Part shown: positions 30,721 through 59,625 of the stretch, one piece after another
How positions within the stretch are numbered: the stretch's first letter is position 1
How the letters are laid out: each line of letters begins with the position of its first letter
Assembly (NCBI RefSeq): GCF_964204645.1
Contig: NC_134034.1
Coordinates: 3,241,814-3,305,813 of the forward strand
Length of the DNA: 64,000 nt
Direction of reading: 5' to 3'
Origin: Tubulanus polymorphus
Lineage: Eukaryota > Animalia > Nemertea
Translations under genes and position numbers: made by a program
Notes under the pieces: model-generated
Seen by the model: only the letters and a program-made list of their open reading frames with translations
Told to the model about the DNA's origin: nothing
The model's database searches: none

Positions 30721-32083
30721 CCGTACTCAGTTATTGAGTACACAGAATGAGAACGAATTGCTAAAAGTTAGGTAAATACTGTTTCTTAGGTCTGAAAAGA
30801 ATCCAATCATGTTATATCATATGCTTAATCATATGCTTTTTAAGTTCTTGATTTATATATAAATGTATTAACCCTTTGTACAGCGCGTAGATTATTATTT
30901 TAGTTATGCGCTATATAAGAAATTAATTATTATTATATTATTATTATATCCTCGAAATTACTACTCAACAAATTGACCGGTGCCGATACGGGAACGGCGT
31001 TATATTTTCCGAATTGTATTGTGTCGTGTATCGAAAGTACTGTATTCATAGAAAATTATTGTAACGAAATTGAGGACCACGATGGTCTATTTCATTAAAC
31101 TTAAACTTAATCTTATATAGTTTTCTTCGCGGGATTTAACACCAGGTGAGGCTTTGTAAACGCCTTCCCTGTTGGACTACGAACGACGAAACGACTGTAT
31201 TAGAAGACGTCTAGTTTATTTCTCACCCACAGTATAGGGCTCCAACAGTATAAATACCTGTGTCCAATGATGTGTTAATCACAAACTGCTTTAACGTATA
31301 AAAGAGAATTCATGCTTGAAATGGTATACACTGAATACAGTTAAATCCAGATTATAGTATTACAGTATTCACTATTATAGTATTCACAGGCTTTTCTTGA
31401 TTATTTGGTGAACGGATTCGTCTGCCGGAATTCTGCGAACGAAATCATCAAATAGCTATAAGTCCTCCGTCGGGTTTTCATGAGACTTTTCAAAAAAGAA
31501 TACATTTTTATTTGGTCACGTCCGTCTTTACTTTTAACCGAATGATTTGTGTGTTGAAATGATTCTGTCACTGGGTTCAAAATCTGTAATATCTATCAAA
31601 TGTGTCCAATCCTGTAAATCAATTTTTTGTGAGTATACTAAATAAACCAGTCTAATGCCAACACTGCCGTCTTGTTTGCCTTCTATGCTCCAGCTCTCCC
31701 GTGATTACAATTTGCAAAAATGAATTCTTTTACTTTATTTCTCCGATATTTTGAATTCATTTCATCACGATTTTCGCTGATATAGATTTTTTGTCTACAG
31801 TCCTTCCGAAATTTTATGCTGAACATACCACGAACAACGAAAACGATTTCAAATTCCTCCGCTTTTTCCTTGATCCCTTCCATTTTAAAACGTCAAGGCC
31901 GCGCTCCGAGTAATCAATTAAGAAAAGGCACGTGTAATGACGAAGATTCAAAGTTTATTTTGCTCCATATTATTTTACAAATAAAACAAGGTGGCCAGTA
32001 GACGGCCTAAAAACCAACAAAACTAAGAGTTTTTGATTAAGTCACATTTTCAACGAAATACTTAAATGAATGAATAACATGTT

Positions 32084-34238
32084 TTATAATGTATACATCC
32101 CTCCATTTAGCCAATCCTGGTCGATCTTGACGATAAATTCCTCCAATATCGCTTCGAGTTTCTCTCGAAGTTCCGCTTTAACAAATTCCTCGAATTCGTC
32201 TCGCGATATCTTTCTATTTCCGTCGGTGTCGGATTCCATCAGTGTCGCTCTTACTTTTTCTCCTTGTTCTCCGATCTGACCCAGAAATGACAGGTAACAT
32301 TCGACTTCTTCCGCGTCCAAATCCCCGCTTTTATCTTTGTCGAATTCTTCGAAGGTGTCCTTCCACTTTTTAACGACTCTCTCGCTGGAATGATTGTGAA
32401 ATGAATAAATGAGGCGACAGTATAATGAATTGACAGCCGATTAGTGTTTCGAGATGATAATCCAACCCCCGGACTAAGAGGACTGCAATCGGTCAAGCAA
32501 CCGAAGACAGAAAACAAGTGCCTACTTCATACAGACTTACAGAGTGAACCATTCCTAATTATAGGGACGTTAGATTATTCAAGGCCCAGGGCCCAGTTCC
32601 AAAGTCATGGCTTAGACTTCAGACCAATTTAAGATCATTTTAGTTCTATAGCCAATCTAACAACTTAGGACCAGTCTTAAGATTTAAGACCTTTTTTGGA
32701 CGTAACTCTCAACTGAAGAACCAGCCCCAGGACATATGATAAGCCCGAGACCTGACACCATGATTTGGAAATTTCCATTCAAATTTGGAAACCTCATCAA
32801 AACCTTAGTTTCACACATTTTTCCTTGATTTTAAAACATTACTTAAAAGTCCAACGTATTATGCTTACAACTATTTCAAAAAGCCGAATATCGAGCGACC
32901 TCAGTCAAGTACCGGCCATATGAAAAATCAACCCAACCCGCTTATTCTTCATGACATTGGCTTAAACGAAAAATCCAAGATGGCCGGTAACGTCAGTTTT
33001 CAATGGGGACTCTACGTTCGACTGCGGCAATCTACTTGTGGTAAGCGAAGATCCACCAGGTTCGCTAGTGTGCATTCAGACAACGACTCCCAGATTTCTT
33101 CTACGATTCAATTAAAATCTAACCATAATTTGTTGAATTCTTTGAATGGTGAGTTAAGTGAAGTTCACCCTATATATGAACCTAAAGATCATTCGAGTTT
33201 ATCAAGAAGGTGATTTGCCTAATTTCTGATGAGGGAGGCTAAAAATCTAGATGAAAGTTCATCCAAAATGAATTAGATTTTGACAGGGTTGTTGCACCGA
33301 TGCGCACGCCATCTAGTGGGATAGCTGGTGGCACCGAGTCCTCATTGTGATGGACATTTCACCTAATCCTCATATCAGGTTTTAGGTATTCATCTTGAAA
33401 TGTGGGGTGTGTATCACACTAATGTGGTCCCTGGGAACGAACGACCTAGGGCGGACACCGATTAATGAAATAAACCCCATCGAGGAGACTAGAAAAAAGA
33501 GGCACATTTAGGGAAATTTTGGTCCGGAAGAACAGCTAAGGTATTTCTTGGATAAAGCAGCCATTTCAAAGGGCAATAACGGGGTCCCTCTATCATTGTC
33601 AAATATTTTTTCGAATAAAGCCGAAAGTAACCGATTACTGGGAGAATGAGTGGTCAGATTTGTAAGGTTTGACAATATAAGTCTTAGTAAAAAAGGCAAC
33701 CACAACTGAACCACTGGACCGCCCCCAGAATCTGCCCCCGAAGTACCGCTGCCGCTGTCTCTTTTATGCATATGCACTATCGATGACATACCTGAACCAG
33801 TCGTGTACGAAGTCATTGAAATCTAACGGTTTTCTCTCTTCTCTGCAGTTGTACTTATTATCCAAATGCTGAAAAAATATCACGTACAAATTCTTACAAT
33901 ATATCATCCGCATTTTGGATTTCTCAATGATATCGTTTACGAAAAATCGATTTCTGAAAGATAATACCTGTTCAAACACGTATTGCACGATATGTGGACA
34001 GAAAATTCGAGGCATCTTTCGAAGAGACATTTCATATCTGAAAAGATCTTACCTTGATATATTTCATATTCGGCAGGACCCTCGACTGTTCCTGAAACGG
34101 AAGCTTGCGACGTCCATGTCCGTTATAATTCTTGGTATATTGCTCCACGGCTTTCTCGAAAACTTTCTTGAATCTATCGGCGATCTGATATTTAGTAAAA
34201 ATGACATCGAACAACTGAAAATATTTGACGTAGTCCAT
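32084..34238 (-). CDS. EF-hand calcium-binding protein, copy 1, 220 aa (exons 34238-34053, 33967-33792, 32384-32084)
   Basis: In-frame GT-AG splicing (phases 0, 2); loops DKDKSGDLDAEE and DTDGNRKISRDE; degenerate EF-like motifs in the N-half. Confidence 0.85.
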
Positions 34239-35313
34239 TTCGATGTTTCAGTCGCTTTACTTTGCGGTGTCAATTCGCCGAATGTGCCCGGTTTACAAGG
34301 TGCGTTTTGACCGCCGACCATAACCTCGAGACAGGTTTAGACGCATTCCCCCTGTCGTCGTTATGTTTTTAAGCAACCTTGGAAAATACCACTCAATCCA
34401 TTCAATACACGGACGAACATTAGATATGCGTTTTGCGACGTACCACCAACGTAAGTTCTTTGTATATTTAATGAATTCTTTTGATGATTTGACTTATAGG
34501 ATTAGGGGCATTGGACGGTTAACCTTTCAATGAACTCCGGACATTTCGATTTAAACGAACATGCCGCGCATTAGATGTTTATATATGTGCATTTTGAACA
34601 TGAACGTAAAAACAACGAACGAAAAGAAAATCAACGTAAATTCTCAAGATTTTAATGCGATCTTTAAATGCAAAAGATATAAACTAAAACTTTGAAATAT
34701 TATTCGCAAAGGAATTTTTGTTGACGTTAGGAAATAAAACGTTTTACGAGAGCCAGCGTAGTTTATCTATCACGCGTGTTTTTTGTTGAACTCCGCCCAC
34801 CTCGTGGCGTTTCAGTCCGTCTGAGTTTCCTAGACGCATAATATAATCATTTGAACCTCGTCTGCGAATCTTTCATATTACAGTAATTCATCATAATTCA
34901 TCAATAATTTTACAATAATTGATTATAAAGTAAAATTTTACTGTTGATAATATTTTATGATTTTCCAGTAATCAGTTATATCTTTTGATATTACAGTAAT
35001 TGATAATATCTAACAATATTACTGAGATTAAAAGTATTTCAGAATATTCAGCTTATTTCACGTCGCGCTTCGTGCAGACAAGGTTTTGCTGAACCCATTT
35101 GTTATTCAACGAGGAACACATTCTGTTGATTATTTTCTCGGGTCGCTCTTCTGTAGATCAACAGTAAGCGTTCTATAAGCGCTACCGACGACCCGACGGC
35201 TAGTCCGATAAGTAATATGAGGAATACGCCCGACATTTCAAAAAACGTCAACGGTTCGGTCTCTGACAATACGTCTGACCACCTGGTAGGATGGTCGCAT
35301 TTAAACTGACGCG

Positions 35314-35838
35314 CGGAACGCGTATAAATTTAAAGGTACGGGACTGTCACTCAGCGAGGATTACAGCCCAGAAACTTCGAATAAAATCCGCGAATTGCTC
35401 CCAATTAAAAAAGCGGCCGTCAAAGCTGGTCACAAAGCGTTCTTCAACTGGCAGGGTAACCTTTTCGTAGACAAAAAACCGTATAAGGGTGATGGTAGCG
35501 AATTTAGACGTAAGAAAAAACCAATGAAAGTGGCCCCGCCGCAGGGGAACACGGTAGCCGAAAATCAAGACGCCACACGTGACGAAGGGGTTTTTTCGTT
35601 TCGTGCCGGACCAAGCCCAGAGAGCTTTGACAAACATGATACAGTGCCAAAAACCGTATCTTATTCAAAATTCGCGGGGAAACCGAATCACAATAGAAAA
35701 CATGCGTCATCAAAGCCTGATTCGAAACGGGCACGGGTTTCTTCATCGGTTACCTCAACGGATGATGGCCTAGGCGATCTAGGCGAGGTGCTGAGGAACG
35801 CGCGCATGACACTAGATTGCGATCCGGTCCAGGCATAA
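35314..35838 (+). CDS. LINE ORF1, C-terminal part
   Basis: Open from 35314: KFKGTGLSLSEDYSPETSNKIRELLP...GHKAFFNWQGNLFVD resembles ORF1 C-terminal domains. Confidence 0.7.
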   Translation, partial: RNAYKFKGTGLSLSEDYSPETSNKIRELLPIKKAAVKAGHKAFFNWQGNLFVDKKPYKGDGSEFRRKKKPMKVAPPQGNTVAENQDATRDEGVFSFRAGPSPESFDKHDTVPKTVSYSKFAGKPNHNRKHASSKPDSKRARVSSSVTSTDDGLGDLGEVLRNARMTLDCDPVQA

Positions 35839-38800
35839 CGGGACACTGAGGCAAAATTATCCATTCTATCACTAAACGTTGGTGGATTGAGGAGCAAATT
35901 ACATGTCCCAGAATTTCAGGCGCTAATTCTGGAAAACGATGTTATCGCGCTAACTGAAACTAAACTCGATGATACGGACGAACAGTGGATAAAGCAGTTT
36001 TTTAAAAGTTTAGGATACAAAATATTCCTTAAGAACCGGAAAAAAATATCATCGTTCCGTTCAGGAGGCATAGCGATCGCCGTTAGACTGAACTTAGCTC
36101 CACATGTATGCCCTATTGACAGCGAAAGTAAATTAGTTCTGTGGCTGCGCGTTCATAAGCAGCTAACTGGATCTGAAAAAAATATCCAGATTGGATGTGT
36201 TTACGTTCCACCCGAATCGAGCAGTTACGGTGGAAGTGAGTGTTTTGACGAACTGAATCTCGAAATAATAGAGAATTATAATGCTAATGATTCGCACTTA
36301 TTTATTTGTGGTGATTTTAATGCGTACACTGGAAGCCTATTTGATTATAGTGACCCAAACGACTTTTTAACACAAGGGCTGGAATTCGAAAACGAGGTTT
36401 TTGCAGACACCCATACTTGTGTACAAATATTAAATTCCCTCAATATTACCAGACGTAAAACAAAGGATCTTTCTATTAACAACTACGGTTTACGGTTGGT
36501 GGAACTATGTAAAAACCATTCAATCATTATCCTGAATGGTCGAATAGCCCCTGATTTAACAGTTGGTGATTTTACGTGCCATAAAGGAGATAATGAACAT
36601 ATTGTCGACTACATGATTTCGTCATCGTACCTTATAAACTATGTAAAGCGGCTGGAGGTAATGGCATTCGACCGGTTACTTTCCGACGTACATAGCGCCA
36701 TCGTGACGCATCTACAACTTAAGACATCAGCGCCAGTTGTAACTGGTTCTCAAAATTTCGAACCGGAGGAGGTAGTGAACTGGGACCCAGATAAAAAAGA
36801 CCAATTCGCACAAGACATTTCGAGAAATTCAACGGTCCTTATTGAAATAAACGAAAACCTGATGAATGGGTCATTGAGCGCAAGCGAAGCCAATGAACGG
36901 CTTTGTGCTGTTATGTTACAATCAGCCGTTAAAGTAATGGGCAAACGAATTGTCAAACGTAAATCGAAACCTCGGCCACCGGCCAAGGCTACCCAAAACG
37001 AAGTCGTTAGAAACACCAGGTTGGATTATCGTCGTGCAAAAAGAACATACTCATCTTTACCCTCACGTAATAATCACTACATAATGAACCGTGCGTTCCG
37101 TAAATACAAAAACGCCATTCACAAATGGAATAGTGATAGGAAGACGGTTTTCAACAAGAAAATACGTTCACTGTCAAAATCTGACCCTCACAACTTCTGG
37201 AACTATTTCAAGAAGAACCACAATAACACGTGTAATGTCTCAAGCGCTGATTTTCTAAATCACTTTAAATCTATGAACGAGCGTCCTGTGCTTGATGGAA
37301 GTGAACCACGGCTTCATAACGTCGAAGACTTTAACGGCAATAACTATGACCAAACCCCTTTAAATCAACCTATTAACGGGGATGAAATATTAAAGAGTAT
37401 AAATAAATTAAAAAACTTTAAGGCTTGTGGTACGGACAAAATCCCTAACGAGTTCTTAAAATCGGCCGAGGAGAGTTTACTACCAACACTTATGTGTCTT
37501 TTTAACAATGTCCTTGATACAGGTAATATCCCCGAATCATGGTTAAACGGAATGATTATACCTATTTTCAAACAAAAGGGTAGTGCTGATGACCCAAGTA
37601 ACTATAGGGGCGTGACTTTGTTGAGCAATGTAGGCAAACTTTTTACTAGTGTCATCAACAACCGGCTAACTAATTACCTAGAGACGAACAATATACTACT
37701 GGAAAATCGAGCAGGTTTCAGACAAAAACACGGCATTCTGGACCATATATACTCCCTTAAGTCACTTGTGGATATGTTTTTGAATAGTAATCGCAAGCTT
37801 TACTGCATTTTTGTAGATTACAAACGTGCCTTTGATAGCATATGGAGAAAGGCTCTGTGGCATAAGATGATCAATAGTGGTGTTACGGGCAAAGTTCTAA
37901 ATGTAATATGTAGCATGTACCAGGGCATCAAGTCATGTGTATTTTCTAATGATAGTAAAACAGATGCCTTTGAAAGTTTTATGGGTGTCAGACAGGGAGA
38001 AAATTTGTCCCCTGTGCTCTTTTCAATATTTTTAAATGATCTGGAAGGCTATTTAGATGCTCAAAATTGTCCCTCCCTAAATCTGCGCATGCGTAATGAT
38101 GCATGGGTCAAATTGATGATCCTTATGTACGCAGACGATACAGTACTTATGAGCGAGAGTCCACAGGGTCTTCAGAAATTGATTGACAACCTGCATGTTT
38201 ATTGCAAAGATTGGAAGTTACAAATAAATTGCGAAAAAACAAAAGTAATGATATTCTCGAAACGAAGACTCCGAAACCCTCCGGAGTTTAATATAAACGG
38301 TCGAGTGTTGGAGTTAGTATATAACTATAAGTATTTGGGTATACTATTCTCCCATACCGGGTCTTTTGCTCAGTGCCGAAAAGCGTTAGCAACCCAAGCA
38401 CAGCGGGCTATGTTCTCTGTTTTAAAAAAGGTTAGCGAATATTCACTCGACGTTGATGTTAGTTTAAAGTTATATGATAGCATGGTATTACCAATCCTAT
38501 TATTTGGTTGTGAAATTTGGGGTTACGAAAATCTCCGAGTTCTTGAGTGCGTGCAGCTGAAATTTTTTAAATATTTACTCAAGTTAAAGAAATCTACTAA
38601 TAGCTCATTTGTCTATGGAGAACTGGGTCGTTTTCCTCTCGAAGTTTACGTACAGCTTAGAATTGTAAATTTTTGGGCAAAATTAATAACTGATGATAAA
38701 TTATCGTCAAAGGTTTACAGTTGTGTTTATAATAGCTATATTGATGGTCAAGCTAACTCTTGGATGGATTCTGTGAAGAACATTTTGCTCCGAAATGGGC

Positions 38801-39291
38801 TCGGATATATTTGGGAAAATCAAAATATTCCAAACGTGAATTACTTGAGTCTGATTCTTAAACAGAGATTGCAGGATCAGTTTATGCAAGTCTGGCATGC
38901 AAAACTTACTGATTCCACTATGGCTGTTACGTATTTAACAATCAAATGCCGTTTCGAAATGGAAAAGTATCTAACTGAATTAACCCCTAGGGACCGGTTA
39001 ACTTTATGTAGATTTAGATGCTCAGCTCACAGGCTACCGGTGGAAGTTGGGCGGTGGCGTGGAATTGCCCGTGCCAATAGGCTGTGCCAAAAGTGTGATT
39101 TAGTGGCGGTGGGGGATGAATATCACTTTTTACTCGTCTGCCCGTACTTCCAGGAATCCAGAGCTAGATATATCCCGGAGCGTTATTGGAGATTCCCCAA
39201 TAACGTAAAGTTGTATGATTTGTTCAACTCAAATTGCCAAACTCTTAAAAAATTGGCGTTGTATATACGCAAATGTTTAATACATTTCTAA
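35839..39291 (+). CDS. LINE ORF2: AP endonuclease + reverse transcriptase + C-terminal Cys/His motif
   Basis: SLNVGGL, LTET, GDFNA, SDVH, NYRGVTL, DYKRAFD, GVRQGENLSP, YADD, YLG, CQKC...HFLLVC; uninterrupted. Confidence 0.97.
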   Translation, partial: RDTEAKLSILSLNVGGLRSKLHVPEFQALILENDVIALTETKLDDTDEQWIKQFFKSLGYKIFLKNRKKISSFRSGGIAIAVRLNLAPHVCPIDSESKLVLWLRVHKQLTGSEKNIQIGCVYVPPESSSYGGSECFDELNLEIIENYNANDSHLFICGDFNAYTGSLFDYSDPNDFLTQGLEFENEVFADTHTCVQILNSLNITRRKTKDLSINNYGLRLVELCKNHSIIILNGRIAPDLTVGDFTCHKGDNEHIVDYMISSSYLINYVKRLEVMAFDRLLSDVHSAIVTHLQLKTSAPVVTGSQNFEPEEVVNWDPDKKDQFAQDISRNSTVLIEINENLMNGSLSASEANERLCAVMLQSAVKVMGKRIVKRKSKPRPPAKATQNEVVRNTRLDYRRAKRTYSSLPSRNNHYIMNRAFRKYKNAIHKWNSDRKTVFNKKIRSLSKSDPHNFWNYFKKNHNNTCNVSSADFLNHFKSMNERPVLDGSEPRLHNVEDFNGNNYDQTPLNQPINGDEILKSINKLKNFKACGTDKIPNEFLKSAEESLLPTLMCLFNNVLDTGNIPESWLNGMIIPIFKQKGSADDPSNYRGVTLLSNVGKLFTSVINNRLTNYLETNNILLENRAGFRQKHGILDHIYSLKSLVDMFLNSNRKLYCIFVDYKRAFDSIWRKALWHKMINSGVTGKVLNVICSMYQGIKSCVFSNDSKTDAFESFMGVRQGENLSPVLFSIFLNDLEGYLDAQNCPSLNLRMRNDAWVKLMILMYADDTVLMSESPQGLQKLIDNLHVYCKDWKLQINCEKTKVMIFSKRRLRNPPEFNINGRVLELVYNYKYLGILFSHTGSFAQCRKALATQAQRAMFSVLKKVSEYSLDVDVSLKLYDSMVLPILLFGCEIWGYENLRVLECVQLKFFKYLLKLKKSTNSSFVYGELGRFPLEVYVQLRIVNFWAKLITDDKLSSKVYSCVYNSYIDGQANSWMDSVKNILLRNGLGYIWENQNIPNVNYLSLILKQRLQDQFMQVWHAKLTDSTMAVTYLTIKCRFEMEKYLTELTPRDRLTLCRFRCSAHRLPVEVGRWRGIARANRLCQKCDLVAVGDEYHFLLVCPYFQESRARYIPERYWRFPNNVKLYDLFNSNCQTLKKLALYIRKCLIHF

Positions 39292-41279
39292 TGTTAAATG
39301 TTGCAATGTCTATTGTAAATTAATTTTGTGCTCTGTGCAATTGTATAATTGTAGAGTAAATAAACTTAACTTAACTAAAAAAAAAATTTAAATTTGTACC
39401 TGAAAACAACGAATGAAAACATTTAACTGTTGGTCTGACTCGCTGTAATCAGGTGCTGGCAATCAGTGCAATCTAACTGTGGCAATCGATGATTCTAGTC
39501 ATGGCATTTGAGGGTCTAACGTGGTTGTTATAGTGCGCAATAGGACATCAACTACTGTGGAAATTATAGAGGATTGCACCAGTGGAACGTGAGTATCTAC
39601 CTGGTGTCGCTAATATGATGTACATAGGAAACCAGCTGCCGTGGCAATTGAGGATTACACTTGTGTTAAGTGAAGATCCACCAGGTGTCACTAGCGGACA
39701 ACAGGATATCAACTGCGATTCGACACGCGAGGAACCACCAGGTGATGCTAGTGTAGGACTAACTGTAATAGTAACACATAAAAGCAGGCAGTTATGTTGT
39801 TGGTCAGTTAGTAATCAATTCGGGCCCAATAAATTTGCATTTCAAAGTTAACGCCACCTGGTGGGTTGGCTGGCTGTTCCTCCGTTCGGATCAATAACGC
39901 TTGAGACGCATTTGATGTACATACACGTGGTCAGTGTTGTTGTACGAACCATTTCAGCGAACTGAAATATATTCAAGGGTTGGGCATTTAGAGGGAGGGA
40001 AAAGAGATTGGGGGGGGGGGGGGGGGGTGAGATTGAGTTATAGTAGATGGTCTTCCACCAGACACCAGGTATATACGACCAGGGGAAAGTGTGGCAGAAA
40101 TTCAAATGGTTTATATGTACGGAAATGAGTAATATGTTACTGGGGGCTGGCGGAGAATTATGCGGATGTGAAGTTCCCCAAAATTACAAAACCGGAGCGG
40201 AGCATTTTTCCCAATATTACTTCTGACCTGTCTATTATCTCTTTTTGATCACCCTGAGTTCTTATGCGGGCTATCAACGAGTTCATTACGTGTCTTACTA
40301 AAGAACCCTTCGGCCCCTATCGATGGATATGCGTGCAGTATTATGATATGTTTGACAATAAAACAAAGTTTGATTTGATGTTGGTTGAAAATCTGATTAA
40401 ATGTCAGAGAAAATACTCACAAAAACTTGAAGGCGATCCAAAATATTCGTACTAGAATTCAAATCATGATCGTCGTATGCGAATTTTACTCTTGTGAACG
40501 GTCTGTACGTCTCGAGCAGGTCGTAAAAAATTCCGCTGAAATTTCCATCTTCCGATTTCATAAAGAAAGGCGGCTCCTGTTCAGATACAGAATGATGAAT
40601 AACATAGTGAGTTCACATTTCATAATTCATCGTTCACCCGGTGAGGCCCGTCTAGTTTGCTTGGTCTTCCGCACTTCATTTTCGACGCCGTCAAAACCGT
40701 TACAGTAATGAATGAAGCTTCTCTGCGTTATTGAATGGGTACTGTGCAAGTCGATGTGCACTACGTCATCAATATTGGTGTATCAAAATAGAAATTATAT
40801 GCAACATTGTGAATTTTGGCAGTATACTAAATAAACCAGTCTAATGTCAACACTGCCGTCTCGTTTGCCTTCTATGCTCCAGCTCTCCCGTGATTACAAT
40901 TTGCAAAAATGAATTCTTTTACTTTATTTCTCCGATCTTTTGAATTCATTTCATCACGATTTTCACTGATATATATTTTTGTCTACAGTCCTTCCGAAAT
41001 ATTATACTGAACATACCACGAACAACGAAAACGATTTCAAATTCCTCTGCTTTTCCTTGTTCCCTACCATTAAAACGACTATAAAAAGCCGCACTCCGAG
41101 TAATCAATTAAGAAAAGGCACGTGTAATGACGAAGTTTCAAAGTTTATTTTGCTCCATATTTTACAAATAAAACTAGGTGGCCAGTAGACGGCCTAAAAA
41201 CCAACAAAACTAAGAGTTTTTTATTAAGTCACATTTTCAAAGAAATACTTAAATGAATGTATACATATTTAATACTGTG

Positions 41280-43268
41280 TTACATCCATGCATTTTCCCA
41301 ATCCTTGTCGATCTCTTCGATAAAATTCTTCAATATCGCTTCGAGATCCTCCTTAATTTCCGCTTTAACGAATTTCTCGAATTCGTCGCGCGATATCCTT
41401 CCATTTTCGTCGGTGTCGGATGCCATCAGTGTCGCTCTTACTTTTTCTCCTTGTTCTCCGGTCTGACCCAGAAATGACAGGTAACATTCGACTTCTTCCG
41501 CGTCCAAATCCCCGCTTTTATCTTTGTCGAATTTTTCGAAGGTGTCCTTCCACTTTTTAACGACTCTATGGCTGGAATAATTGTGAAATGAATAAATGAG
41601 GCGACAGTATAATGAATTGACAGCCGATTAGTGTTTCGTAATGATAATCCGACCCGCGGGCTAAGACGGCAGTAATAGGTCAAGCAACCGAAGACAGAAA
41701 ACAAGTGCCTACTTCATACAGACTAACAGAGTGAACCATTCCAAATTATAGGAACGTTAGATTATTCAAGGCCCAGGGCCCAATTTCACGAACATTTAAC
41801 TCAATTTTCATTCAAATTTTGAAACCTCATTAAAAAATATAGTTTCACGAATTTTTTCTTGATTTGAAAACATTACTTAAAAGTCCAACGTATTATGCTT
41901 ACGACTATTTCAAAAAGCCGAATATCGAGTGACCTCGGTCATGAAAAATCAACCCAACCCGCATATTCTTCATGACATTGGCTTAAACGAAAAATCCAAG
42001 ATGGCCGGTAACGTCAGTTTTCAATGGGGACTCTACGTTCGACTGCGGCAATCGAGGATTCTACTTGTGGTAAGCGAAGATCCTCCAGGTGTCGCTAGTG
42101 TGCATTCAGACAACGACTCCCAGATTTCTTCTGAGATTCAATTAAAATCTAACCATAATTTGTTGAATTCTTTGAATGGTGAGTTAAGTGAAGTTCACCC
42201 TATATATGAACCTAAAGATCATTCGAGTTTATCAAGAAGGGGATTTGCCTAATTTCTGATGAGGGAGGCTAAAAATCTAGATGAAAGTTCATCCAAAATG
42301 AATTAGATTTTGACAGGGTTGTTGCACCGATGCGCACGCCATCTAGTGGGATAGCTGGTGGCACCGAGTCCTCATTGTGATGGACATTTCACCTAATCCT
42401 CATATCAGGTTTTAGGTATTCATCTTGAAATGTGGGGTGTGTATCACACTAATGTGGTCCCTGGGAACGAACGACCTAGGGCGGACACCGATTAGTGAAA
42501 TAAACCCCATCGAGGAGACTAGAAAAAAGAGGCACATTTAGGGAAATTTTGGTCCGGAAGAACAGCTAAGGTATTTCTTGGATGAAGCAGCCATTTAAAA
42601 GGGCAATAACGGGGTCCCTCTATCATTGTCAAATATTTTTTTCGAATAAAGCCGAAAGTAACCGATTACTGGAGAATGAGTGTTCAGATTTGTAAGGTTT
42701 GACAATGTAAGTCTTAGTAAAAAAGGCAACCACAACTGAACCACTGGACCGCCCCCAGAATCTGCCCCCGAAGTACCGCTGCCGCTGTCTCTTTTATGCA
42801 TATGCACTATCGATGACATACCTGAACCAGTCGTGTACGAAGTCATTGAAATCTAACGGTTTTCTCTCTTCTCTGCAGTTGTACGTATCATCCAAATGCT
42901 GAAAAAATATCACGTACAAATTCTTACAATATATCATCCGCATTTTGGATTTCTCAATGATATCGTTTACGAAAAATCGATTTCTGAAAGATAATACCTA
43001 TTCAAACACGTATTGCACGATATGTGGACAGAAAATTCGAGGCATCTTTCGAAGAGACATTTCATATCTAAAAAGATCTTACCTCGATATATCTATTATT
43101 TATGAGGACCCTCGACAGATCATCTAACGAGAGCTGGCAACGTCCATTTCCGTCATACGTCTTGGTATATTGCTCCACGACGTACTTGAAAACTTTCTTG
43201 AATCTATCGTTGATCTGATATTTAGTAAAAATGACATCGAACAACTGAAAATATTTGACGTAGTCCAT
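41280..43268 (-). CDS. EF-hand calcium-binding protein, copy 2, 217 aa (exons 43268-43083, 42997-42822, 41571-41280)
   Basis: Same exon phases; loops DKDKSGDLDAEE, DTDENGRISRDE. Confidence 0.85.
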
Positions 43269-44134
43269 TTCGATGTTTCAGTCGCTTTACTTCGCGGTGT
43301 CAATTCGCCGAATGTGCCCGCCCGGTTTAGAAGGTGCGTTTTGATCGCCGACTATAAACTCGAGACAGGTTTAGACGCATTCCCTCTGTCGTCGTTATGT
43401 TAATCCCATTCAATCCATTCAATACACGGACGAACCACCAATGTAAATTCTTTGTCTATTTAATGAATTCTTTTGATGATTTGACTTATAGGATTAGGGG
43501 CATTGGACGGTTACTCTTTCAATGAACTCCGGACATTTCGATTTGAACAGACATGCCGCGCATTAGATGTTTATATATGTGTATTTTGAAGATGAACGTG
43601 AAAACAACGAACGAAAAGAAAATCAACGTTAATTCTCGAGATTTTAATGCGATCTTTAAATGCAAAAGATATATACTAAAACTTTGAAATATTATTCGCA
43701 AAGGAATTTTTGTTGACGTTAGGAAATATAACGTTTTACGAGAGCCAGCGTAGTTTATCTATCACGCGTGTTTTTTGTTGAACTCCGCCCACTGAGTAAC
43801 CTCGTGGCGATTCAGTCCGTCTGAGTTTTCTAGACGCATGATATAATCATTTAAACCTCTGCGAATCTTTCATATTACAGTAATTCATCACATTTTATAA
43901 TATCGCAATAATTTTACAATAATTGATTATAAAGCAAAATTTTACAGTCGATAATATTTCATGATTTTCCAGTAATCAATTATACCTTTTGATATTACAG
44001 TAATTGATAATATCTAACAATATTACTGAGATTATTAAGTATTTCAGAATATTCAGCTTATTTCACGTCGCGCTTCGTGCAGACAAGGTTTTGCTGAACG
44101 CATTTATCATTCAACGAGGAACACATTGTGTTGA

Positions 44135-45864
44135 CTATTTTCTCGGGTCGCCGCCGCCATTTTCCAGTAATTTCGCTCTTCTGTAGATCAACAGTAAGCG
44201 TTCTATATGCGCTACCGACGACCCGAAGGCTAGTCCGATAACTAATATGAGGAATACGCCCGACATTTCAAAAAACGTCAACGGTTCGGTCTCTGACGTT
44301 TCGTCTGACCACCTGGTAGGATGGTCGCATTTAAACTGACGCGTGGTGTACCTGAAAACAACGAATGAAAACATTTAACTGTTGGTCTGACTCGCTGTAA
44401 TGTCAGAATGCTCCCACTAAATGTGGGTCAGTTAGTAATCAATTCGGGCCCAATAAAAGTTAACGCCACCTGGTGGGTTGGCTGGCTGTTCCTCTGATCG
44501 GATCAATAACGCTTGAGATGCATTTGATGTACATACACGTGGTCAGTGTTGTTGTACGTACCAAGGTTTGGGCTTTTTTTTGGGGGGGGGGGGGTGATAT
44601 GGAGTTATAGTATATGGTCTTCCACCAGACACCAGGTATATACGACCAGGGGAAAGTGTGGCAGAAATTCAAATGGTTTATATGTACGGAAATGAGTAAT
44701 ATGTTACTGGGGGCTGGCGGAGAATTATGATGTGGTATTCCTTAAAATTACAAAACCGGAGCGGAGCATTTTTCCCAATATTACTACTGACCTGTCTATT
44801 ATCTCTTTTTGATCACCCCGAGTTCTTATGCGGGCTATCAACGAGTTCATTACGTGTCTTACTAAAGAACCCTTCGGCAAAGCTAATGCGAATCGTAACC
44901 CGTAAACCTCTTTAAGTCCATATTCGATTAAATCGCATCTTTGCGCTACAGTGTACCGCGCCGTTAGCGTATCGGTGATCAGTATGAAATTCTCGTTGAC
45001 AATTCTTTCAACAGCGGTTTCTAAATCCGGCAGTACGTTACCGGTTCGGCGTATAAAGTTCCATACCATGATATCGGGATATTTCTGCGCTTTCGACAAA
45101 ACTTTCTCCACTTGGGTGTTTTTGATGACGCCGAAATTGCCCTCGCCCCTTTCGATCAATTCGTTGAGATCCTTTATCGGGTTTTCACCGGCACTCAATC
45201 TCAAGAACGCCGTCATATTGGCCGTATAGGCGGCCGATAGGGCTAGACCGAGAAACATTACAACGGTGACGAGGATCCTACTGGGAATGGCGTTTGGATT
45301 AGTGTCCGAACTTCCGCTACTGAGTCGAGCCATCGTGAAGTAGAGACTGTCCACTAAAGAGATCGTGTCGGTTGTGTAGTCTATAAACGTCAACAACGAC
45401 AGCAATATACTTATGACGAGTATCGTTGCCAGAATAACCAGCCAAAAAGTGCCGACGAACGGTTTTAGAAATTGCCAGCGATTCTTCTCAACTCTGGGCA
45501 GCTTCGATACCAGGTGCAACCACGCCGGAAAAATCGGGTCGCTGAAATCCACGGAGGTTGTCCGCTCGAAGTCGTTAGAAAATCCACCAGCTACTATCTC
45601 CCCCTAGCGGTGGAAATGCGTGCAGTATTATGATATTTTTGACAAATACAACAAAGTTTGCTTTGACGTTGGTTGAAAATTTGATTAATTGCCAGAGAAA
45701 ATACTCACAAAAATTTGAAGGCGATCCAAAATTTTCGCACTATATTTCAAATCATGATCGATGTATGCGAATTTGACTGTAGTAAACGGTCTGTACGTCT
45801 CGAGCAGGTCGTAAAAAATTCCGCTGAAATTTCCATCTTCCGATTTCATAAAGAAAGGCGGCTC
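44135..45864 (-). CDS. iGluR/IR-like ligand-binding + channel cassette, copy 2, apparently intact, no own start exon found (exons 45864-45709, 45603-44792, 44351-44135)
   Basis: EPPFFMK..GNFSGIFYDLL, ERTTSVDFSDP, FLKPF (pre-M1), PNAIPSR, AYTANMTAFL (SYTANLAAF position), ALALPKGS, M4 LTFFEMSGVFLIL; all splice sites canonical and in frame. Confidence 0.8.
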
Positions 45865-46567
45865 CTGTTCAGATATGGAATGATGAATAACCTAGTGAGT
45901 TCACATTTCATAACTCATCGTTCACCCGGTGAGGCCCGCCTAGTTTGCTTGGTCTTCCGCACTTCATTTTCGACGCCGTAAAAACCGTTACAGTAATGAA
46001 TGAAGCTTCTCTGCGTTATTGAATGGGTACTGTGCAAGTCGATGTGCACTACGTCATCAATATTGGTGTTTCAAAATAGAAATTATATGCAACATTGTGA
46101 ATTTTGGCAGTATACTAAATAAACCAGTCTAATGTCAACACTGCCGTCTTGTTTGCCTTCTATGCTCCAGCTCTCCCGTGATTACAATTTGCAAAAAAGA
46201 ATTCTTTTACTTCATTTCTCCGATCTTTTGAATTCATTTCATCACGATTTTCACTGATATATATTTTTGTCTACAGTCCTTCCGAAATATTATACTGAAC
46301 ATACCACGAACAACGAAAACGATTTCAAATTCCTCTGCTTTTCCTTGTTCCCTACCATTAAGACGACTATAAAAAGCCGCACTCCGAGTAATCAATTAAG
46401 AAAAGGCACGTGTAATGACGAATTTTCAAAGTTTATTTTGCTCCATATTTTACAAATAAAACTAGGTGGCCAGTAGACGGCCTAAAAACCAACAAAACTA
46501 AGAGTTTTTGATTAAGTCACATTTTCAAAGAAATACTTAAATGAATGTATACATATTTAATACTGTG

Positions 46568-48709
46568 TTACATCACTGCATTTTGCCAATCCTGGTCGAT
46601 CTTGACGATAAAATTCTCCAATATCGCTTCGAGATCCTTCTTAATTTCCGCTTTAACGAATTTCTCGAATTCGTCGCTCGATATCCTTCCATTTCCGTCG
46701 GTGTCGGATTCCATCAGTGTCGCTCTTACTTTTTCTCCTTGTTCTCCGATCTGACCCAGAAATGACAGGTAACATTCGACTTCTTCCGCGTCCAAATCCC
46801 CGCTTTTATCTTTGTCGAATTCTTCGAAGGTGTCCTTCCACTTTTTAACGACTTTCTCGCTGGAATAATTGTGAAATGAATAAATGAGGCGACAGTATAA
46901 TGAATTGACAGCCGATTAGTGTTTCGTAATGATAATCCGACCCCCGGGCTAAGACGACAGTAATAGGTCAAGCAACCGAAGACAGAAGACAAGTGCCTAC
47001 TTCATACAGACTAACAGAGTGAACCATTCCAAATTATAGGAACGTTAGATTATTCAAGGCCCAGGGCCCAGTTTCACGAAAATTTAACTCAATTTTTTGA
47101 TTAATTGCCATTGGTTACTTCATGTTTTCAATTAGGACAACAATTCAAACTCAACCGTTTTAAGCTTAAACTTTTCGTGAAACTGGGCCCTGGACATATC
47201 ATAAGCCCGAATCCTGACACCATGATTTGGAAATTTCCATTCAAATTTTGAAACCTCATCAAAAATATAGTTTCACGAATTTTTTTCTCGATTTGAAAAC
47301 ATTACTTAAAAGTCCAACGTATTAAGCTTACGACTATTTCAAAAAGCCGAATATCGAGCGACCTCGGTCATGTACCGGCCATATGAAAAATCAACCCAAC
47401 CAGCATATTCTTCATGACATTGGCTTAAACGAAAAATCCAAGATGGCCGGTAACGTCAGTTTTCAATGGGGACTCTACGTTCGACTGCGGCAATCGAGGA
47501 TTCTACTTGTGGTAAGCGAAGATCCTCCAGGGTCGCTAGTGTGCATTCAGACAACGACTCCCGGATTTCTTCTAAGATTCAATTAAAATCTAACCATAAT
47601 TTGTTGAATTCTTTGAATGGTGAGTTAAGTGAAGTTCACCCTATATATGAACCTAAAGATCATTCGAGATTATCAAGAAGGGGATTTGCCTGATTTCTGA
47701 TGAGGGAGGCTAAAAATCTAGATGAAAGTTCATCCAAAATGAACTAGATTTTGACAGGGTTGTTGCACCGATGCGCACGCCATCTAGTGGGATAGCTGGT
47801 GGCACCGAGTCCTCATTGTGATGGACATTTCACCTAATCCTCATATCAGGTTTTAGGTATTCATCTTGAAATGTGGGGTGTGTATCACACTAATGTGGTC
47901 CCTGGGAACGAACGACCTAGGGCGGATACCGATTAATGAAATAAACCCCATCGAGGAGACTAGAAAAAAGAGGCACATTTAGGGAAATTTTGTTTCGGAA
48001 GAACAGCTAAGGTATTTCTTGGATAAAACAGCCATTTCAAAGGGCAATAACGGGGTCCCTCTATCATTGTCAAATATTTTTTCGAATAAAGCCGAAAGTA
48101 ACCGATTACTGGGAGAATGAGTGGTCAGATTTGTAAGGTTTGACAATGTAAGTCTTAGTAAAAAAGGCAACCACAACTGAACCACTGGACCGCCCCCAGA
48201 ATCTGCCCCCGAAGTACCGCTGCCGCTGTCTCTTTTATGCATATGCACTATCGATGACATACCTGAACCAGTCGTGTACGAAGTCATTGAAATCTAACAG
48301 TGTTCTATTTTCTCTGCAGTTGTACGTATTATCCAAATGCTGAAAAAATATCACGTACAAATTCTTACAATATATCATCCGCATTTTGGATTTCTCAATG
48401 ATATCGTTTACGAAAAATCGATTTCTGAAAGATAACACCTATTCAAACACGTATTGCACGATATGTGGACAGAAAATTCGAGGCATCTTTCGAAGAGACA
48501 TTTCATATCTGAAAAGATCTTACCTTGATATATTTCATATTCGGCAGGACCCTCGACAGTTCATGTAACGAGAGCTGGCAACGTCCATGTCCGTTATACT
48601 TCTTGGTATATTGCTGCACGACTCGCAGGAAAACCTCCTTGAAACTATCGTCGATCTGAAATTTAGTAAAAATGACATCGAACAACTGAAAATATTTGAC
48701 GTAGTCCAT
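46568..48709 (-). CDS. EF-hand calcium-binding protein, copy 3, 217 aa (exons 48709-48524, 48438-48263, 46859-46568)
   Basis: Same exon phases; loops DKDKSGDLDAEE, DTDGNGRISSDE. Confidence 0.85.
47066..47189. mobile_element. Short Harbinger-like MITE in EF-hand intron 2
   Basis: TIR GGCCCAGTTTCACGAAAA...TTTTCGTGAAACTGGGCC between CAG/CTG. Confidence 0.75.
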
Positions 48710-49563
48710 TTCGATGTTTCAGTCGCTTTACTTCCCGGTGTCAATTCGCCGAATGTGCCCGCCCGGTTTAGAAGGTGCGTTTTGATCGCCGACTATAAAC
48801 TCGAGACAGGTTTAGACGCATTCCCTCTTTCGTCGTTATGTTAATCCCATTCAATCCATTCAATACACGGACGAACCACCAATGTAAATTCTTTGTCTAT
48901 TTAATGAATTCTTTTGATGATTTGACTGATAGGATCAGGGGCATTGGACGGTTACTCTTTCAATGAACTCCGGACATTTCGATTTGAACAGACATGCCGC
49001 GCATTAGATATATATGTGTATTTTGAACATGAACCTGAAAACAACGAACGAAAAGAAAATCAACGTTAATTCTCGAGATTTTAATGCGATATTTAAATGC
49101 AAAAGATATATACTAAAACTTTAAAATATTATTCGCAAAGGAATTTTTGTTGACGTTAGGAAATATAACGTTTTACGAGAGCCAGCGTAGTTTATCTATC
49201 ACGCGTGTTTTTTGTTGAACTCCGCCCACTGAGTAACCTCGTGGCGATTCAGTCCGTCTGAGTTTCCTAGACGCATAATATAATCATTTGAACCTCTGCG
49301 AATCTTTCATATTACAGTAATTCATCATAATTCATCAATAATTTTACAATAATTGATTATAAAGTAAAATTTTACAGTTGATAATATTTTATGATTTTCC
49401 AGTAATCAATTATACCTTTTGATATTACAGTAATTGATAATATCTAACAATATTACTGAGATTAAAAGTATTTCAGAATATTCAGCTTATTTTACGTCGC
49501 GCTTCGTGCAGACAAGGTTTTGCTGAACGCATTTATTATTCAACGAGGAACACATTGTGTTGA

Positions 49564-59625
<10,062 letters not shown>

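Follow-up and report, generated by a model that had tools for sequence, protein, structure and literature searches.

In this work we analysed a 64,000-nucleotide stretch of the genome of the nemertean Tubulanus polymorphus (the window, positions 3,241,814-3,305,813 of NC_134034.1, in an assembly of 268 Mb), which carries three tandem copies of an EF-hand gene whose coding exons have diverged more than the non-coding DNA around them. We favour diversifying (positive) selection after duplication as the explanation, with a probability of about 60%. Judged from their sequences, the three copies are young tandem paralogs of a family of proteins of about 185 residues, so far found only in T. polymorphus. 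The genes are already annotated in RefSeq, two as "uncharacterized" and one as "oncomodulin-like"; what is new is not the locus but the evolutionary mode, which is itself of a known kind. Calmodulin is among the slowest-evolving proteins and EF-hand sensors usually evolve slowly, whereas the copies described here are species-restricted and have a ratio of non-synonymous to synonymous substitution rates (dN/dS) above 1, next to a co-duplicated neighbour under purifying selection. They would thus provide a clean small example of adaptive divergence after duplication, and may point to a fast-changing interaction in ribbon worms.

Comparison of the window with itself delimits three tandem units that are 91-95% identical, each composed of a minus-strand three-exon EF-hand gene followed by exons of a glutamate-receptor-type channel. 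The coding parts of the three EF-hand genes (copies 1 to 3, in units 1 to 3) are 92-95% identical overall. The units and the corrected exons are as follows.

31625 to 35313: unit 1
40814 to 44343: unit 2
46102 to 49772: unit 3
34053 to 34238, minus strand: copy 1 (LOC141912227, protein P0002), exon 1, 62 codons from the ATG
33869 to 34052, minus strand: copy 1, intron 1, 184 nucleotides, GTAAGA...TTTTTTCAG
33792 to 33868, minus strand: copy 1, exon 2, 77 nucleotides, encoding HLDNKYNCREERKPLDFNDFVHDWF plus 2 nucleotides of a split Ser codon
32385 to 33791, minus strand: copy 1, intron 2, its 5' half (33791-33091) lying within a homogenised tract
32084 to 32384, minus strand: copy 1, exon 3 including the stop codon, encoding the third and fourth EF-hands (EF3 and EF4, the Pfam EF-hand pair) and a variable C-terminal helix
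43083 to 43268, minus strand: copy 2 (LOC141912228, protein P0003), exon 1, in which the majority of the lineage-specific changes lie
42822 to 42898, minus strand: copy 2, exon 2
41280 to 41571, minus strand: copy 2, exon 3 including the stop codon
48524 to 48709, minus strand: copy 3, exon 1, reading frame intact in the DNA
48263 to 48339, minus strand: copy 3, exon 2
46568 to 46859, minus strand: copy 3, exon 3 including the stop codon

An initial annotation of this DNA had recognized three tandem copies with open coding sequences, and all three are indeed open. It had, however, placed exon 2 of copy 1 at 33967-33792 (176 nucleotides), an exon that we reject because the RefSeq splice puts its first 34 codons (102 nucleotides) in intron 1; the 85-nucleotide intron of that annotation also lies inside the real intron 1. 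The three RefSeq proteins (P0002, copy 1, 187 amino acids; P0003, copy 2, 184 amino acids; P0001, copy 3, 127 amino acids) all splice ...KYIK/E straight to HLDN..., through the strong acceptor TTTTTTCAG at 33869, and this direct junction fixes intron 1 at 184 and exon 2 at 77 nucleotides. The corrected model can be aligned over its full length with two paralogs of 183 amino acids, P0006 and P0014, which lack the 34 extra residues. An in-frame TGA lies 12 nucleotides upstream of the ATG of copy 1, so exon 1 is a true start and not a continuation of the upstream channel exons. A 1-nucleotide deletion in exon 3 of copy 1 adds a terminal YTL to its protein. The "oncomodulin-like" model of copy 3 starts at Met58 and is probably 5'-truncated: the full exon 1 reading frame is open, and copies 2 and 3 share 98.8% identity in their 5' flanks. 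The queries for copies 1 and 2 were their public proteins, P0002 and P0003; exon codons were concatenated only for counting and for dN/dS.

The mis-called exon 2 and the truncated RefSeq model of copy 3 raise the question of an artefact, in which wrong exon calls, pseudogenes or mis-assembled alleles would have been taken for real expressed paralogs. We regard this as very improbable. Two independent public protein models are identical to the corrected one, which also aligns end to end with the 183-residue paralogs, and the units differ in structure, by the insertion of a long interspersed nuclear element (LINE) and a deletion in unit 1 and by indels, and so are not collapsed alleles. Moreover, correcting the gene model strengthens the excess of exon over intron divergence instead of removing it.

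That exons evolve faster than introns, as the initial annotation had proposed, holds on the corrected model and is driven by amino-acid-changing substitutions. Site patterns were counted on a gap-masked three-way alignment. Variable sites make up 70/545 of the coding positions and 69/1775 of all non-coding positions, a comparison that assumes no tree (p=1e-12); the excess is still 2.4-fold when only non-coding DNA outside the homogenised tract is used (50/923, p=1e-6). Sites specific to copy 2 amount to 28/545 in coding and 12/1775 in non-coding DNA (7.6-fold, p=4e-10), those specific to copy 3 to 14/545 and 17/1775 (2.7-fold, p=0.009), and those assigned to copy 1 or the stem to 26/545 and 40/1775 (2.1-fold, p=0.003). 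Among 183 aligned codons 52 are variable, and 49 of these change the residue while 3 are purely synonymous. Expressed as tree lengths, non-synonymous change reaches 14.4%, synonymous change 8.4% and change in unconverted non-coding DNA 5.4%; the non-synonymous length exceeds the non-coding one 2.7-fold (p=1e-7), whereas the synonymous length is not different from it (p=0.36).

Several counts of the initial annotation were reproduced on the way. Exon 1 shows 18 differing residues out of 62 between copies 1 and 2, all from residue 20 onward, the three strings given for the C-terminal helix match the sequence exactly, and the 85-nucleotide stretch does differ at 2 positions between copies 1 and 2. 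The statement that exon 2 is nearly unchanged did not survive, the unchanged part being intron: real exon 2 differs at 2 sites between copies 1 and 2 and at 5 sites in each of the other two pairs, and all of these differences are non-synonymous. The conservation of the intron itself has a separate origin, in the following tract.

33091 to 34052, minus strand: gene-conversion tract of about 1 kb, running from intron 1 across exon 2 into intron 2 (5' half), in which all three copies have been homogenised

Within this tract copy 1 is the odd one at 4/852 sites, compared with 36/923 in the other non-coding DNA (p=4e-7), and change amounts to about 0.5-1% per branch. The extreme conservation of intron 1 beside exon 1 is due to this homogenisation. 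Exon 2 lies inside the tract and has 6 variable sites in 77 nucleotides, versus 19/852 in the surrounding tract. About half of the intron conservation seen at first is due to these two effects, the mis-called exon and the conversion tract, a useful caution for comparisons of this type. A search of the conserved introns for Rfam families found none.

The dN/dS ratio exceeds 1 in every pair by the NG86 method (1.61 for copies 1 and 2, 1.43 for copies 1 and 3, 2.58 for copies 2 and 3) and is 1.7 for the tree. By maximum likelihood, with a GY94 codon model written by the authors and fitted on the three-taxon tree, it is 3.5 with F3x4 codon frequencies (twice the log-likelihood difference, 2dlnL=10.2, p=0.0014) and 2.7 with F1x4 (p=0.011). 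Multi-nucleotide changes can reportedly yield false positives in tests of this kind (Venkat, Hahn and Thornton are said to have described this in 2018), and for that reason the 17 multi-step codons were removed, upon which the ratio is 3.9-4.5 (p=0.004-0.01). Counts point the same way: single-step derived codons comprise 32 non-synonymous and 3 synonymous changes, with 20-24% expected to be synonymous. Estimates of 1.4-2.6 (NG86) and 2.7-4.5 (maximum likelihood) are not what homogenised introns alone would give, namely a ratio of 1 or less.

The channel exons duplicated with the EF-hand gene serve as an internal control. The features concerned are these.

35887 to 39291, plus strand: intact open reading frame (ORF) of a LINE, 1134 amino acids (Exo_endo_phos endonuclease and RVT_1), in unit 1, with the EF-hand gene on one side and what is left of the channel cassette on the other
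40314: deletion junction in unit 1, where the stretch homologous to 44878-45601 is absent
44725 to 45552, minus strand: ion-channel ORF of unit 2, 275 amino acids, Pfam Lig_chan, intact, co-duplicated with the EF-hand gene
50537 to 51364, minus strand: ion-channel ORF of unit 3, 275 amino acids, Lig_chan, intact, 97% identical to that of unit 2

Unit 1 is longer because the LINE inserted there, and the deletion removed most of its channel ORF, so that its cassette is the only one of the three clearly broken at the channel exon. Between units 2 and 3 the 275-codon channel ORF has proportions of synonymous and non-synonymous differences of 0.062 and 0.021, and a maximum-likelihood dN/dS of 0.37, below 1 (p=0.017); it is under purifying selection. 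Its non-synonymous to synonymous counts differ from those of the EF-hand gene in a contingency test (p=0.0009). The decay of the neighbouring receptor cassettes described earlier thus applies to unit 1, which lost its channel ORF, but not to units 2 and 3. The accompanying proposal, that selection retains the EF-hand gene rather than the receptor, is unsupported, since two of the three channel ORFs are intact with a dN/dS of 0.37.

Several observations weigh against selection as the cause. There are only three sequences and about 101 synonymous sites, and it is because sequences and sites are so few that the NG86 ratios are modest. The test on single-step codons is borderline (p=0.02-0.07). 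Synonymous divergence of the channel ORF is more than twice that of the non-coding DNA of the units (6.2% versus 2.5%), so that the latter may underestimate the neutral rate. In other paralog pairs of the family, exon 3 diverges at about the non-coding rate (5 of 6 pairs), with dN/dS of 0.4-2.2; weak constraint would therefore be a family trait, of which the triplet, and above all copy 2, is the extreme case. This result also led us to reject the excess of exon over intron divergence as a general property of the other paralog clusters. The observations on the channel ORF and on the other paralog pairs speak for relaxed constraint with a biased baseline, in which the coding sequences would drift nearly neutrally with a true dN/dS close to 1 while the non-coding DNA is too conserved, through conversion or slower evolution; the demonstrable conversion tract and the NG86 ratio for the tree fit this scheme as well. 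The likelihood-ratio tests nevertheless reject a dN/dS of 1 (p=0.001-0.011), the non-synonymous to synonymous counts differ from those of the co-duplicated channel ORF, and the non-synonymous tree length remains above that of non-coding DNA lying outside the tract. In addition, the ORFs have stayed open, and neither the residues invariant in the family nor the canonical EF3 loop nor the hydrophobic positions have been lost. Given these properties we consider relaxed constraint unlikely, slightly more so than the rival discussed next.

The other points of this kind concern the clustering of the changes. When neighbouring substitutions are merged into events, a strong coding excess persists only on the copy 2 branch (5.4-fold, p=2e-6), the copy 3 and copy 1/stem branches dropping to 2.0-fold and 1.6-fold (both p~0.1). 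The lineage-specific coding changes fall into fewer runs than expected (30 versus 44.7, P=1e-4), some of them affecting 3-4 consecutive bases, and in their arrangement such runs recall the replacement of segments more than they do point substitutions arising one by one. The main rival explanation is accordingly that patchy gene conversion or templated complex mutation replaced short pieces of exon, the donors being copies since lost or carried only by other haplotypes or individuals, with selection as an optional ingredient. It is in line with the multi-nucleotide nature of 9/44 derived codons and with several dense blocks, namely 4 consecutive bases at 34074-34071, 8 substitutions in 20 nucleotides at the 3' end of exon 1 of copy 2, and 4 changes in 11 nucleotides in exon 2 of copy 3, which produce E73N, K75T and P76L; the sites at which copies 1 and 3 agree and copy 2 differs could also come from conversion between copies 1 and 3. 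A pattern of this type is documented as "accelerated segment switch in exons" (ASSET) in snake three-finger toxins, which have similar introns and switched exon segments (Doley et al. 2008, PMC2474615). In the 268-Mb assembly, however, no donor was found: exons 1, 2 and 3 closely match only the three copies, and the next paralogs have at most 46% protein identity. Conversion restricted to exons needs a special donor, for example a processed copy, and none was found; an old, diverged donor should also have raised the synonymous tree length, which is not above the non-coding one. Since dN/dS in addition stays at 3.9-4.5 without the multi-step codons, we hold segment replacement to be a doubtful alternative to diversifying selection, if the foremost one.

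Venom multigene families are known to evolve in an accelerated manner, with conserved introns and fast exons (Doley et al. 2008, PMC2474615; Doley et al. 2009, PMC2711939). They resemble the present genes in that the genes are multicopy or tandem, introns are more alike than exons, and substitutions concentrate in short stretches of exon, where they alter surface charge, while fold and core are conserved. The present case is unlike these families in several respects. The EF-hand copies do not seem to be secreted toxins, there are only three of them and the similarity of their introns is in part a demonstrable conversion tract, and the effect is modest, coding change being 2.4-3.6 times non-coding change.

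The location of the changes in the protein is relevant to what selection could be acting on. Pfam finds an EF-hand pair only, at residues 93-156, in all three copies (EF-hand_7, 42.7-50.9 bits for a cut-off of 30; EF-hand_7, EF-hand_6 and EF-hand_1 all match above the gathering score). The EF3 loop, DKDKSGDLDAEE, is invariant in all copies; the EF4 loop reads DTDGNRKISRDE / DTDENGRISRDE / DTDGNGRISSDE, with the ligand positions kept across copies. Both 12-residue loops have, as read from the sequence, acidic or polar ligands at positions 1, 3, 5 and 9 and Glu at position 12, which would be compatible with calcium sensing. The solved relatives found by phmmer against the PDB are calmodulin lobes (E ~4e-10, over residues ~85-160), and the best 60 listed are all calmodulins or calmodulin fusions. 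The N-terminal ~90-95 residues gave no Pfam match. In an hhalign comparison of the N-terminal with the C-terminal lobe, the first loop of the former aligned faintly to the EF4 loop, over 15 columns only (E 0.009, probability 4.5%), AlphaFold2 modelled the N-terminal lobe as helix-loop-bridge-helix twice, and its look-alikes in the ESM Atlas were at noise level. For the whole protein, AlphaFold2 with a 7-sequence alignment gave a confident model (confidence score, pLDDT, 83; fold score, pTM, 0.78), with four helix-loop-helix units, short bridges and a continuous helix from 149 to 183. The predicted plan is thus a pair of degenerate helix-loop-helix units forming the N-terminal lobe, followed by the canonical EF3/EF4 pair and a long C-terminal helix. 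As noted initially, no signal peptide is evident. The N-terminus, MDYVKYFQLFDVIF, does not resemble one: residues 2 and 11 are acidic, and the model shows folded helices there (pLDDT 86-89). The protein would be intracellular.

Variable residues are unevenly distributed along this plan: none of 16 in residues 1-16, 27/60 in 17-76, 4/61 in the segment of EF3 with its helices (77-137) and 18/47 in 138-184. Residues hydrophobic in every copy account for 3/49 of the variable and 55/135 of the invariant positions (p=2e-6), the charge class changes at 31/49 variable positions, and no column that is invariant in the paralog alignment has been altered. The initial annotation had suggested a binding surface or pocket under diversification, and such a surface is plausible in view of the avoidance of hydrophobic positions and the changes of charge, whereas clustering of the variable residues on one face of a helical wheel was not significant (P=0.11 and 0.30).

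In the rows listed by Foldseek and VIA-align (best 50), the fold matches are to generic EF pairs, over residues ~85-165 (Z 8-10). Residues ~85-160 thus resemble the lobes of calmodulin and centrin by Pfam, by fold and by their canonical ligand positions; the triplet differs from these proteins by its extra C-terminal helix of about 25 residues, by N-terminal 90 residues without a Pfam match, by its fast evolution and by full-length relatives found in T. polymorphus only. Parvalbumins and oncomodulins are proteins of about 108 amino acids with three helix-loop-helix units. They share with the copies a pair of canonical EF-hands, but the RefSeq name of copy 3 is rejected, as the proteins have 184-187 amino acids and four units and no parvalbumin is present among the best 60 relatives listed. 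The sarcoplasmic calcium-binding proteins (SCP), calexcitins and photoproteins are four-EF-hand proteins of similar length, and four helix-loop-helix units are likewise predicted for the copies; none of these families was among the matches listed by phmmer against the PDB, Foldseek or VIA-align (best 50), though a weak or absent fold match is no proof of difference. Caltubin was the only whole-chain row from a molluscan protein with four EF-hands, and a weak one (Z 7.4, root-mean-square deviation 10.2 Å, 126 residues aligned).

When 1.84 billion representatives were searched exhaustively with HMMER, T. polymorphus was the only species to yield full-length relatives (P0006, P0014 and P0009). 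At least 20 paralogs are present in its genome, clustered on contigs C8 and C12 and single on other contigs. The clusters at C8:2152000-2170000 and C8:3829000-3847000 (L027/L030, L028/L031) look like segmental duplicates of each other (L006/L005, L007/L010, L011/L012), with tandem arrays at an offset of about 39 nucleotides scattered among them; comparison of the C8 and C12 clusters with themselves by BLAST brought out mainly these minisatellite arrays. The pair L011-L012 has an exon 3 dN/dS of 2.2.

Under diversifying selection, the history of the locus could be described as follows. A unit composed of the EF-hand gene and the glutamate-receptor-type channel exons was duplicated twice, after which amino-acid-changing substitutions would have accumulated above the neutral rate, at polar positions of the N-terminal lobe (17-76) and of the region that starts with the EF4 loop and includes the C-terminal helix (138-183), while EF3, the calcium ligands of EF4 and the hydrophobic residues stayed the same in kind. 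Each copy might in this way have gained a different partner or regulatory specificity and kept its calcium-sensing module. Separately, gene conversion evened out the tract from intron 1 to the 5' half of intron 2 among the three copies, sharpening the contrast between exons and introns. Two more speculative ideas, which we think have little chance of being right, go further: either the EF-hand protein is a dedicated calcium-sensing partner of the neighbouring channel, its fast-changing charged surfaces giving each cassette a private sensor, or exon-restricted segment switching, so far described from venom toxin genes, also operates on an intracellular calcium sensor. The basis for the private sensor consists of co-duplication, a shared strand and opposite selective regimes (dN/dS 3.5 versus 0.37) only.

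Other features of the window are a dispersed repeat and a region of unusual composition.

33091 to 33347: dispersed repeat of about 255 nucleotides, resembling a short interspersed nuclear element (SINE) or a miniature inverted-repeat transposable element (MITE), in intron 2 of copy 1 and at the same place in copies 2 and 3
52000 to 54000: GC-rich block (GC 0.56, versus ~0.39 elsewhere)
52117 to 53337, plus strand: Ser/Arg-rich ORF of 406 amino acids, within this block
53888 to 54744: long TA-type microsatellites

The repeat was inserted earlier than the triplication; a first look across the genome gave 306 candidates, and the matches listed have 82-88% identity and lie on many contigs. The microsatellites follow the Ser/Arg-rich ORF and read as YIYIYI in several frames.

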